64,000 nucleotides of DNA, taken from the NCBI GenBank assembly GCA_900088475.1, contig FLMG01000787.1:98871-162870 (forward strand), written 5' to 3'. The notes under the pieces were generated by a model. The model made no database searches and was not told the DNA's origin. It was given only the letters and a program-made list of their open reading frames with translations. The translations under genes and the position numbers were made by a program. This document shows, piece after piece, positions 1 through 60,610 of the stretch. This DNA comes from Hyphochytrium catenoides (taxonomy: Eukaryota > Protista > Hyphochytriomycota). Position 1 is the first letter of the stretch. Each line of letters opens with the position of its first letter.

Positions 1-3000
1 GGTCTTGAGATCTGGTGAGAGGGCGAGGCTGCGAAGGCGAGTCTCATGCATGCCGCCTTGAGAGCAAAATCTATTAGGAAACGCTGTAGCTAATCACATG
101 CCTACTTGTCTTGCTCTCGTCAGTTTTCCCTCGCTCCTCTTTGTTCTTTACAGATGTACTGTCTTCTTGTTGCTTTCTTGGCCCTTGCTCCGCCATCCCT
201 TCGTCTACTAGGATCTCTGCACTTACTGATTTTAAGGGTCTCGATCTCGTGCAGGCACTGAAGAGAGCGATTCCAAAGCTTTAGCATACCATCCCTTCCG
301 CCGGTCGCGAAGCCATCTCTGAACGGCGCCAAGAGAGAGATCGCAGAAGTGTGCGCTTTGATGGAGGAGGAGAGAGAAGAGCCGTCGAACTGACAGATGT
401 ATCCGTCGCTTGTGGAGGCAATTGGCTGGCATTGCTTGCCGTTCTCAAGGTAGAGACAATCAATGAATATCTGCGCATAGGCATATGGAGGACGGAAAAG
501 AGAGCAGTCAAAACGAGGGCAGGACTCAGACTTTAAAAGAGGAGGAGGATAAAGGAAGAGAGTGCAGAAAAGCTTTCTCCAGCTTTGCTATCAGGCTCCC
601 TTACGCGTGCCTCAGTGCTCTTCCTGTCAGTGCCTTCATTTGCATCTCTCACCTTAGGGTTGTCGTTCTTCACTCCTGTTATGGAGGCTGGTGTGTGCTT
701 GCAGAAGGGAGACGTTTCCCAGAAAGATACATGTTGAATGCCGCAGGTCATGATTAAGGGGAGACGAGGGTGAAAGCACGCGCCTAGCACTTTGTTGGGA
801 GAGAGAGTGGACCTGAAGGAATGATATGTCGAAACGAGGGATGAGAGACACATAAGAAGATGAAGCCGGAGAAGAGAGGAGAGAGATACATGGTGTCAGG
901 CTGACAGAGCGAACCGATCATTGAGGTCCAGCCTGGACAAACTGATAGAAGCAAATAGCCACTTCTCCAAAGTACAAGCAGCCAAGCACAAAGAGACAAT
1001 CTTTAAAAAGCCCTGAGAGTCGAATGAGCAGAAAGAGGGCCTGATTACCTGTGGAGGACGTGGCCATCTTCCCAGTGATAGAGGATCAGAGTGTTAAGAG
1101 GATCCAAGCCGACAGAAAGTAGGAGCTCTCCTGTTCCTTCAGAGAATCGCAAGAGAGAGACACCACCCTCATGTTCGCCTCTCAAGATCTGCCGCACCTC
1201 TCCCTTCATTGTGCTCCAGATGACAATGCTGGGGCAGGTCCCTGCCTCCCCGGTGGCCACAAGGTCTTTCATCGGATGCATAGCAAATGAGAGAATCTCG
1301 TCCTTATGTGCCTGTGGTGCAAGGACAGAGAAGACGCAGAAAATTTGAACTCGACGTCAGAGAAGCCTTCCTTCTTCAAACCCTGGCTCGCCGACGCCTC
1401 AATCTTCACTGGCTCTGCCCGTACCACCAGTAGTTTGGCCTGCCCCCATATAAAGTCCTCTTAACAATCTTTTTACCTAGTGTCGCTGTGCTAGGTGAAA
1501 AGATCCGTACCTAATCCTGTTTCCCCTTCTCCTACACCCCCTTGCTGCCTCTCAAGGCTAGTCTTATTAGGCCTGCAGCGCCTTACCAGATTGAATCGCT
1601 GTGACCTACTACTTTGATCAAGAGAGACAACCACAGCACCAGCCGTGTAGACCAGCCTGCCAGCAACGTCATACTCAAGGTTCCGCCTCAGCTTCTCCGC
1701 AGAGTAGCCGCTGACCCATCGTAGCGTCAGGCGGTCAGTCGGAGGCGTTAGGTTGGGTTCAGTAACGGTAGATGAGGATGGCGCAACCACACTCTTCAGC
1801 CACATTCGTAAAGGATTCCCTTGTTCAGATGGCTGGATAACTATAAAAATTTTAAAGGTATAGAGAGAGCTTGAGTGAGATGGCTTCCTTCGAGAGCACA
1901 CATTGTGACATGGCCGCGTCCCTTTGCCTCTGATCGCCGAATAACGTCCTTCTCCTTGTCTCTCTTCTTTCCGCGAATCCTTTCCATTTCATCCTATCTC
2001 TTGTCGCTCCCACTATGCACTTCGTCATTCTCTATTGTGTCCTGCCCTTTACATCCGTCATCTCACGCTCTTTCTTCTCCTGTCTTAACATACCATTCGC
2101 TGTGCTATTGAGAGCTCCGCTATCCAGCGTCCGGTGAACAGTCTCTAGTCCTACGTCCCGGACGAAGGCACTGCCAGGGAGCAGTTCCTTTGCCCCAGCC
2201 TCCACCTCTTCCTGTACGAGGAAGCCACTCGCCTCTGCAGCTTGTGAAGAGGAGACAGAAGGGGAAAGCTTTATTCTCTCCCATTGAAGGATGCAGGCGT
2301 CTTCGCTGCACGACAGTAGATAATCTTCCTCCTTTGTGCTAACGATATGGTTGATGGTGGCACCGTGAGCAGGGTAATATAGATGCGGACTTCCCATTTT
2401 AGTGGCTGGATAGTGAACGACAGAGAGTCCACCAGAGCTATCACCTGCCACAACAGTCTACACAGCACGATAATGGACAGAAAGGATAGAGGGAACACAA
2501 GCACAAAGTCAGTGGCTCGGTAGCAAAGATATTCTAGAGCTACTAGCGGCATTTCTATGGGAGATGCGCGTCTGCAGCCACCGAAGCGGTGAAAAATAGA
2601 GTGAACGGAAGGATGTAAGAGTGGGAGAATTATTAGGAAGCCTTCGAAGGTATTGGGCGGCAGCGACTGAGAAGATGATAGCACTTGCAAGTAGGCTAAA
2701 CTGCTAATGACGGGAGAGGAAGTAGAGCACTCTTAAAGCTCTGAGAGGAGGACGCTATGGACGTGCACCCACCGGGGAGGTAGATAACCTGCAGGTGACT
2801 TTGAACATTCTACCGTCATCTTGCTTTGGCCAGATTCCTATGGAGACAGAATGCCACCGTCAGCTATATTCCGAAGAGGAGAAGGAGAGAGGAGTGCAAG
2901 CAGAGCCGGACATAACGCAATCGATGATGGAGAAGTAGCACGAGGCTGCGAGGGGCCTGAGGAGAGCCCACGCAGAGCAACAGCACAGAACAGAAGGAGC

Positions 3001-57869: not shown

Positions 57870-58937
57870 ATGGGGGCGTGCAGCTCTAAGGTTTCAGACG
57901 AGGAGGCGAAAGAGCGGGAGGTAAACGATGAATTGGACCAAAAGAATAGGCAAGACGCCATTGTAGAGTCACAGAAAGTAAAGCTTCTCCTACTGGGCGC
58001 CGGAGAGAGCGGGAAGTCCACTATATTTAAGCAGATGAAGCAGCTCTATGGCTCTCCTCTCACCATAGACGAGAAACGACAGATCACGAACGTCGTTTTC
58101 GCCAACATCTTCCAGACAATGAAAATTCTCTGCGATCAGGTGCAGAAGCTAGGTTATGCTGACAAGTTTACTCATCAGGAAGCTCGAGACTATATCTTAG
58201 GAATCAGGGATGAGACTCGCTTCGATCAGGAAGCAGGAAGGCGTCTGAAGGAGCTCTGGCATGATGAAGCCATTCAGCTGACGTGGAAGAAGAGATCCAA
58301 GTTCTTTGTGCTCGAATCCAGTGCTTACTTCTTTGACAAGGTAGACGAGCTATCGAAGCCAGGGTACATCGTCAGTGATAGAGACGTCCTCATGGCACGA
58401 GTTCGAACGACTGGGATTGTGGAAGAGTCGTACCTCATCAACGGAGTGCAGTTCTGCATCTTTGATGTGGGAGGGCAGCGGAATGAGAGAAAGAAGTGGA
58501 TTCACTGCTTTGAAGACGTCACTGCGGTGATCTTTGTGGCTGCGCTGAGCGAGTATGACCAGCATCTTTTTGAGGATGCGTCCATGAATCGCATGGTAGA
58601 GGCCATACAACTGTTTGATGAGGTGTGCAACAACAAGTACTTCACTGAGAGCTCTATGATTCTCTTCCTCAACAAGCGCGACCTCTTCGATATCAAGATC
58701 CGCATTGTCAACATCAACGAAGTGGAGTGCTTTAGGGACTATACCGGGACGCTAGGAGACTTCGAAAGAGGCTGTGAGTACTTCTTGCAGAAGTTCCTGA
58801 GCAAGAACAAGACGCCGTTTGCTAGGGAAATCTACTACCATGTGACCTGTGCTACGGACTTAGAGAATGTTAGAGTTGTCTTTGACGCATGTAGAGACAT
58901 TATCTTGCAAGCCAATGTGACTGACTCCGGGCTGTAG
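57870..58937 (+). CDS. Heterotrimeric G-protein alpha subunit, intronless, 355 aa
   Basis: Start in CACCATGG context; MGACSSK provides a myristoylation Gly and a palmitoylation Cys. G1 GAGESGKST, switch I RVRTTGI, G3 DVGGQ, G4 NKRD, G5 TCAT. Confidence 0.96.
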   Translation: MGACSSKVSDEEAKEREVNDELDQKNRQDAIVESQKVKLLLLGAGESGKSTIFKQMKQLYGSPLTIDEKRQITNVVFANIFQTMKILCDQVQKLGYADKFTHQEARDYILGIRDETRFDQEAGRRLKELWHDEAIQLTWKKRSKFFVLESSAYFFDKVDELSKPGYIVSDRDVLMARVRTTGIVEESYLINGVQFCIFDVGGQRNERKKWIHCFEDVTAVIFVAALSEYDQHLFEDASMNRMVEAIQLFDEVCNNKYFTESSMILFLNKRDLFDIKIRIVNINEVECFRDYTGTLGDFERGCEYFLQKFLSKNKTPFAREIYYHVTCATDLENVRVVFDACRDIILQANVTDSGL

Positions 58938-59462: not shown

Positions 59463-60402
59463 CTAGCCCGCCTTTCGCTTTTGCCTTCCGAGTCTTTTTT
59501 TGTTGGAATCCAGCATGCGAGTCTGGGTAGAGTTAAGAATAGACACACTGACAGGAAGTAAGGTTCATAGATGCGTCGCTAGACAGGGATACGAATGACA
59601 GAGAGAACCACGCTTCGTCAGAGCTGTGGAACATTATGAGAGACACAGCTATAAAAGAATCATCTCTAATAAGCTGCACCGGAGTCTAAAGAGAAGAGAC
59701 AGCGACCATAGCGGAGGACCATAGGAGAGAAGACACCGAGACAGAGCAAGAAGAGATGAAGAAAAAGACAAAGAGCGAGAAGCCATGAGAGGCCTGCTTT
59801 AAGACAGATAGCCGGTTGGAGTTGGATACATATCGATTCAGCTGGTCCACCATATGGACCGAATCGGGTATGTGGACATAAAGGACTTTGGTCCCTGGCA
59901 CAAAGAGTGTCTCCAGATCTATAACAATGCCCTAGGATGCCAACAGTTAGCGAGAGCTAGACCTTTCTAGCTTATTATAAAGGCGAAGGCGGATGGATGG
60001 CATGGAAGAATGACGAAGATTTGCTCAGGAGAATAAGGAAAAGACCCACAGCTCTTGACCAGGAGACCTACCGTGCTGGGCTCCCTTGTCCGGACTGCTG
60101 TCATAGTCAGGCTGGCAGAAGGCGCCAAAGATAAGCATTTGTCGGGAAAGTGATGAATTTGGCGAGGAAGGGAAGTGGTCAACACGTCGCTTTATTTAGA
60201 AAGGGGAGCCAGTGGTAGGATAGGATACTTACTTCATGCCTCTATCTATAAACTCTAGCAGCCCTTCGACCTGAAGCTCGTTCTTCAGCTCCACCAAGAT
60301 CACCTTACCAAGCAAGCTCTTAAGAAGTATCAGAAGCGAACGCAGATGCTGAGGCAGCTTCCTTCTCGACCCAGGCTCGGGAGCAGCCAAAGATTTCTCC
60401 AT
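59463..60402 (-). CDS. LSM10: U7 snRNA-associated Sm-like protein LSm10 homologue, 4 exons, 123 aa
   Basis: Exons 60402-60233, 60111-60072, 59931-59830 and 59522-59463 (GT-AG, phases compatible) give MEKSLAAPEPGSRRKLPQHLRSLLILLKSLLGKVILVELKNELQVEGLLEFIDRGMNLTMTAVRTREPSTGIVIDLETLFVPGTKVLYVHIPDSVHMVDQLNRYTRMLDSNKKRLGRQKRKAG*. Sm1 and Sm2 motifs carry the LSm10-type SLxILL and LFV.G....YVHIPD segments. The last exon is the least certain. Confidence 0.75.
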
Positions 60403-60610
60403 TGTTGGCTAACAGCTCACCGGGACCTTCGCATGCCCCCCGGCGCACGAGAGCTTCTACTGTCCCATTCCCTTCTGGCGCGGCTCCTTCTCCGCTCTTC
60501 CCGCTGCTCGTCTCTGAAGTATGCAGAAGCGCCAGAATCTTCAAAAGAGCTTGCAATCCCTGTATTCCCATTCCTTACAAAGTTAACGAGCATCTTCAGC
60601 AGTGAACTTT

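Follow-up and report, generated by a model that had tools for sequence, protein, structure and literature searches.

Between positions 60402 and 59463 on the minus strand of the window (the whole 64-kb stretch of DNA analysed here), we identified what is probably an intact gene, split into four exons, that encodes the LSm10 orthologue of a stramenopile protist, a reading that rests on sequence comparison and to which we assign a probability of roughly 0.8. Textbooks present the U7 snRNP as an 'animal-only' machine for making non-polyadenylated histone mRNAs, and recent surveys indicate that its two U7-specific proteins are much older than animals. With the window gene, the pseudofungal side of the stramenopiles gains a well-supported LSm10.

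A four-exon gene on the minus strand

Reading the letters of the minus strand and translating them piece by piece yielded four short exons that join in frame across GT..AG introns, with the following arrangement:

60233..60402, minus strand: exon 1, with the ATG at 60402-60400, 56 codons plus 2 nt, and the donor GTAAGT
60112..60232, minus strand: intron 1, 121 nt, GTAAGT...CAG, phase 2
60072..60111, minus strand: exon 2, 40 nt, with acceptor CAG and donor GTAGGT
59932..60071, minus strand: intron 2, 140 nt, GTAGGT...TAG, phase 0
59830..59931, minus strand: exon 3, 102 nt encoding 34 aa, with acceptor TAG and donor GTATCC
59523..59829, minus strand: intron 3, 307 nt, GTATCC...CAG, phase 0, placed after the Tyr of ...NRY
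59463..59522, minus strand: coding part of exon 4, with acceptor CAG and the stop codon TAG at 59465-59463

The joined exons amount to 372 nt, that is, 123 codons and a stop. The frame is unbroken, the start and stop are intact, and the splice sites follow the consensus or come near to it, with the GTATCC donor of intron 3 standing out as a non-consensus site. A first-pass annotation of this DNA had proposed four small exons spliced in frame to a 123-aa Sm-fold protein, and its exons, frame and length were all recovered on re-reading, as was each of the residue strings that it quoted, found in the piecewise exon translations. Its remark that only exon 3 appears in the open-reading-frame track needs correcting, because exon 1 is likewise listed there as an ORF of 57 aa.

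Exon 1 translates to MEKSLAAPEPGSRRKLPQHLRSLLILLKSLLGKVILVELKNELQVEGLLEFIDRGM, which starts with a basic extension of 20 residues and then runs through helix alpha-1 and the opening half of the Sm1 motif (VILVELKNELQVEGLLEFIDRGM). Its Pfam LSM score of 17.9 bits falls short of the cut-off, since this exon supplies no more than half of the domain. Intron 1 falls within the codon for the Asn in the 'MN' of Sm1, between AA and C; exon 2, which reads (N)LTMTAVRTREPST with the N supplied by the split codon, completes the Sm1 motif and adds the variable loop. On full-length relatives, the matches of exons 1 and 3 are separated by a gap of 13-14 residues, into which exon 2 fits. Exon 3 translates to GIVIDLETLFVPGTKVLYVHIPDSVHMVDQLNRY and carries the Sm2 motif with an LSm10-like signature, FVPGTKVLYVHIPDSV. 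Exon 4 contributes TRMLDSNKKRLGRQKRKAG and the stop; this basic tail prolongs the C-terminal helix and is free of RG repeats.

Conservation of the gene in related loci

An exhaustive protein search with exon 1 retrieved three related exon 1 read-throughs, whose contigs we call L001, L002 and L003. The first of these, L001, is a contig from a related organism that is orthologous to, and syntenic with, the LSm10 locus. Exon 1 of the window is 66% identical to its counterpart there (P0001), and all four exons are matched, with the same phases and intron positions, including an exon 2 of 40 nt and an exon 3 of 102 nt; even the unusual GTATCC donor is identical and located at the same codon. These features are retained although the introns of the two loci are unalignable, measuring 68, 65 and 86 nt in L001 compared with 121, 140 and 307 nt in the window. 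Synonymous changes account for 14 of the 26 codons that differ in exon 3, and for 15 of 30 in exon 1. Exon 2 of L001 encodes (N)LTMTAVRSRNPFT, and TRMLETNRGRLGKQKRKAPSR is encoded where exon 4 of the window has its tail. The position and phase of intron 1 are common to L001 (68 nt) and L002 and absent in L003, and intron positions 2 and 3 are common to L001 and to the more distant L002 and L003. At the level of sequence, these comparisons demonstrate that the LSm10 gene is conserved under purifying selection.

In L003, a metagenomic relative, the LSm10-like gene (1003-1452, minus strand) has exons 1 and 2 fused, without intron 1, and adjoins a gene for an XPG_N-domain nuclease.

The neighbour of the LSm10 gene in the window is an intronless gene for a G-protein alpha subunit (57870-58937, plus strand; E 6e-109 to Pfam G-alpha) whose product starts with MGxxxS, of the myristoylation type. 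The two genes are convergent, with 525 bp from stop to stop, and their pairing is kept in L001, where the G-alpha protein is 79% identical to that of the window. Upstream of the ATG, a 10-mer that loosely resembles an E2F site, GATTCTGGCG, occurs in both the window (60530-60540, at -137) and L001 (1068-1077, at -12); with about 0.15 such matches expected by chance, it is not significant.

Family membership and its spread

On a family HMM built from 84 members, exon 1 maps to positions 9-54, the split Asn to 55, exon 2 to 56-68 and exon 3 to 69-101, so that the exon pieces are collinear on the model, without gap or overlap. A profile of the exon 1 pieces retrieved full-length, intron-free relatives at E values of 1e-12 to 1e-14 among 5.8 billion proteins, and a search with a profile of seven relatives returned at least 120 family members, mostly unnamed sequences from metagenomes, Logan assemblies and MMETSP transcriptomes. 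Among the matches listed, those with named NCBI/UniRef entries were all either unnamed products of brown algae (Ectocarpus, Pylaiella, Ascophyllum and Laminaria) or insect proteins named 'U7 snRNA-associated Sm-like protein LSm10'. Two close relatives came from EukProt, one from Mallomonas annulata and one from Cladosiphon okamuranus. That Mallomonas and brown algae figure among the nearest full-length relatives is consistent with the stramenopile origin that the first-pass annotation had considered probable.

Automatic names assigned by JGI to three members (P0035, P0040 and P0008) read 'U6 snRNA-associated Sm-like protein LSm2' in two cases and 'prophage tail gpP-like protein' in one; these names are evidently wrong for members of the LSm10 family.

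A self-match was absent from every protein search that we ran, indicating that the proteome of this genome is not in the searched collections. A word search with the exon 3 ORF and an exact look-up of the window's G-alpha protein each returned no match.

Sequence and fold affinity to LSm10

Scoring queries were run against all PDB chains, with exons used singly and full-length database relatives serving as proxies. The bit scores were as follows:

Profile of 76 non-animal members: human LSm10 110.1 (E 7e-31), best LSm2 76.8, best SmD1 64.4
Profile of 7 members: human LSm10 58.7, best LSm2 49.3, best SmD1 48.2
Single member P0013: human LSm10 43.1, best LSm2 24.5, best SmD1 29.8
Exon 3 alone (phmmer, PDB): human LSm10 (6v4x_C) 21.1 (E 0.002) as the sole match, with none to LSm2 or SmD1
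Exon 3 profile (gene plus three relatives): LSm10 32.2, LSm2 12.7, SmD1 13.1
Exon 1 alone: LSm10 14.7, LSm2 19.3, SmD1 not listed
Exon 1 profile: LSm10 22.4, LSm2 32.0, SmD1 20.5

Under the 76-member profile, LSm10 outscores LSm2 by 33 bits and SmD1 by 46, and the alignment covers residues 4 to 107 of human LSm10. With the exon 3 profile, LSm10 leads the next match by 19 bits. The affinity is not uniform along the gene: exon 3 by itself matches nothing but LSm10, and exon 1 by itself is slightly closer to LSm2 than to LSm10. This lean towards LSm2 arises because the protist proteins keep VELKN(D/E), which has been lost in animal LSm10. LSm10 still comes first, with 54.6 bits, when the two exon profiles are added together; LSm2 totals about 45 and SmD1 34.

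The exon 1 profile also matched polyubiquitin, a likeness of 18 residues summed over the ubiquitin repeats, with no significant single stretch, and these matches were set aside. In the exon 1 alignment (profile positions 30-47), LAIFVQSLQGTTIAVEL of relatives P0003-P0007 looks like the strand and turn with which ubiquitin begins, MQIFVKTLTGKTITLEV; we take the likeness for chance.

The AlphaFold model of a transcript-derived relative, P0027 (pLDDT 84.5), comprises a helix, five strands and a C-terminal helix: helix 19-25 is followed by the five strands, across which pLDDT exceeds 93, and a further helix, 92-109, follows the Sm fold. The Sm fold is thus seen in the model of this proxy relative, and the window exons are collinear with the family to which it belongs. 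In a Foldseek search with the P0027 model, the top four matches were LSm10 chains of the human U7 snRNP (9nh5_C, 6v4x_C, 9n96_C and 9nb1_C), at 29-33% identity over 88-102 columns, ranked above LSm4, SmD1 and SmD3. For another member, P0043, the ESM Atlas look-alikes were a pair of LSm10 clusters and a generic snRNP cluster with nearly equal scores, an outcome that agrees with LSm10 without discriminating. Taken from the profile scores and from the ranking of the predicted fold, the conclusion that the gene belongs with LSm10 and not with LSm2 or SmD1, as the first-pass annotation had proposed, is supported.

Signature residues and an Arg-to-Leu change

The Arg of the Sm2 'RG', present in SmD1 and LSm2 alignments, is absent from human LSm10 (TG), from 74 of the 76 protist members and from this gene (PG). 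Both the core Sm residues and the His of YVHIP are kept in the window gene. Its N-terminal extension places 20 residues ahead of the helix, and its C-terminal tail ends without RG repeats; alignments of the family to human LSm10 begin at human residue 4-14.

One residue departs from the family pattern. All 84 family members examined, insects included, have Arg at the second position of I-R-Y-V-H-I-P; Leu takes its place in the window (VLYVHIP; 59872-59880, codons V-L-Y, exon 3) and in L001 (ILYVHVP; 1456-1464), while L002 and L003 retain the Arg of IRYVHIP. Given this change, the function of the ring position may have shifted.

Alternative readings of the locus

Could the locus be something other than a working LSm10 gene? 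The least credible of the alternatives, to which we attach almost no weight, is that the frame arose by chance or belongs to a decaying pseudogene, and the non-consensus GTATCC donor might speak for this. This is made very unlikely by the conservation in L001, where exons, phases and that same donor persist between unalignable introns and many codon changes are synonymous, by the intron positions common to L002 and L003, and by the end-to-end mapping on the family HMM; the frame, moreover, runs intact from start to stop with the core Sm residues in place. We also regard as improbable, although a little less so, a divergent paralogue of SmD1 or LSm2 that merely resembles LSm10. Such a paralogue would account for exon 1 alone being closest to LSm2, for the VELKN common to LSm2 and SmD1, and for the 'LSm2' names that JGI automatically gave to two family members. 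It is countered by the margins of 33 and 46 bits with which the family profile favours LSm10, by the 19-bit lead of LSm10 in exon 3, by the four LSm10 chains that top the fold search, and by the missing 'RG' Arg, the N-terminal extension and the lack of an RG tail.

A further alternative leaves the identity of the protein in place and changes its setting: an LSm10-type protein could sit in a different, lineage-specific Sm ring rather than on a histone-processing U7 RNA. Trypanosomes, which swap Sm subunits on particular snRNAs, offer a comparable precedent. The Leu found in the window gene and L001 at an otherwise invariant Arg would fit such a ring, and so would the LSM10 and LSM11 homologues of land plants, a group long believed for the most part to have no stem-loop histone processing (bioRxiv 10.64898/2026.10.14.759114). 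The family, however, stays conserved with animal LSm10 throughout the Sm fold and on into the C-terminal helix, which argues against such a ring, and we consider this setting unlikely, if less so than the two readings above.

A possible U7-type function

In the animal ring assembled on U7 snRNA, SmD1 and SmD2 give way to LSm10 and LSm11, the U7 RNA pairs with the histone downstream element, and LSm11 together with FLASH recruits CPSF73 (PMC7026596; bioRxiv 10.64898/2026.10.14.759114). A U7-type function of the window protein is something we infer only, by analogy with this system. On that analogy, LSm10 would take the SmD1 position in a heptameric Sm ring, with a neighbouring LSm11 replacing SmD2, and the ring would sit on a small RNA of the U7 type. 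This RNA would use its 5' end to pair with a purine-rich box located behind the stem-loop of histone pre-mRNAs; the CPSF73 endonuclease, brought in by LSm11 and a FLASH-like partner, would then cut the histone pre-mRNA just after the stem-loop.

Rfam searches of the 64-kb window, at the gathering threshold and at E values up to 5, returned no U7, histone stem-loop or snRNA. It is tempting to suppose, although we would put this somewhat below even odds, that a true U7-type snRNP acts on the histone pre-mRNAs of this stramenopile lineage, with a guide RNA that escapes all covariance models; the Arg-to-Leu change would then be the mark of a remodelled ring.

The presence of LSm10 alone is not proof of a U7 pathway, because LSM10-like genes have been reported in land plants too. 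The first-pass annotation had allowed that LSm10-like sequences of protists might already be known, and this proved correct: LSM10 and LSM11 homologues are described in stramenopiles (Ectocarpus and others), dictyostelids and land plants (bioRxiv 10.64898/2026.10.14.759114), and PpLSm10 and PpLSm11 have been named in Physarum, where a U7 RNA was sought and not found (PMC8600027). An early origin of the machinery was argued in a 2008 survey by Davila Lopez and Samuelsson, according to a passage in PMC5054213. With LSm10 already reported in protists, the window gene is a correct but fairly ordinary find, its novelty lowered because LSM10 and LSM11 are on record from stramenopiles and other groups; by itself, it represents an annotation gain and no surprise. 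Its value lies in providing a handle for finding a non-animal guide RNA, via the RNA bound by the tagged protein, and such a guide RNA would show whether RNA-guided cleavage of histone 3' ends predates animals.

Comparison with known systems

LSm2, a subunit of the LSm1-7 and LSm2-8 rings, is the best PDB match of exon 1 alone and has KSL.GK.V.VELKN in common with the window protein. LSm2 is a protein of about 95 aa that starts at the helix and carries IRGSVVRYVQLP, and the window protein has none of these traits, being 123 aa long with an extension ahead of the helix; where LSm2 has YVQLP, the window protein has YVHIP.

SmD1, the protein whose ring position LSm10 takes over, has the VELKN and LETL motifs and the Sm fold in common with the window protein. 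Its Sm2 region, however, reads IRGNNIRYFILPD, with the RG Arg and a YFILP that lacks the His, whereas the window gene has PGTKVLYVHIPD. SmD1 starts at the helix and ends in a C-terminal RG-repeat tail, in contrast to the 20-residue extension and the absence of RG repeats here, so that the window protein differs from SmD1 in its type of Sm2 motif and at both of its ends.

The LSM10 homologues of protists, algae and plants, with Ectocarpus, Pylaiella, Ascophyllum, Laminaria, Cladosiphon and Mallomonas among the matches, belong to the same family as the window gene, and we know of no RNA partner for any of them. Compared with these homologues, the window gene comes from a different, non-photosynthetic stramenopile lineage, contains three introns and bears the Arg-to-Leu change, which it has in common only with L001.

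Human LSm10 (chain C of PDB 6v4x, 9nh5, 9n96 and 9nb1) differs from the window protein in having VDLR(D/N)E, as animal LSm10 does, where the N-terminal half of the protist proteins has VELKN(D/E) in the manner of SmD1 and LSm2, and in having the Arg of VRYVHIP where the window protein has Leu. Identity to human LSm10 is only about 30%, yet it is the best match in both sequence and fold. The two proteins are of equal length, at 123 aa, and in each an N-terminal extension precedes helix alpha-1, followed by the Sm fold and a C-terminal helix. Both lack an Arg before the Sm2 Gly as well as an RG-repeat tail, and both carry the signature ...F-V-x-G-x-x-V-x-Y-V-H-I-P-D-x-V.
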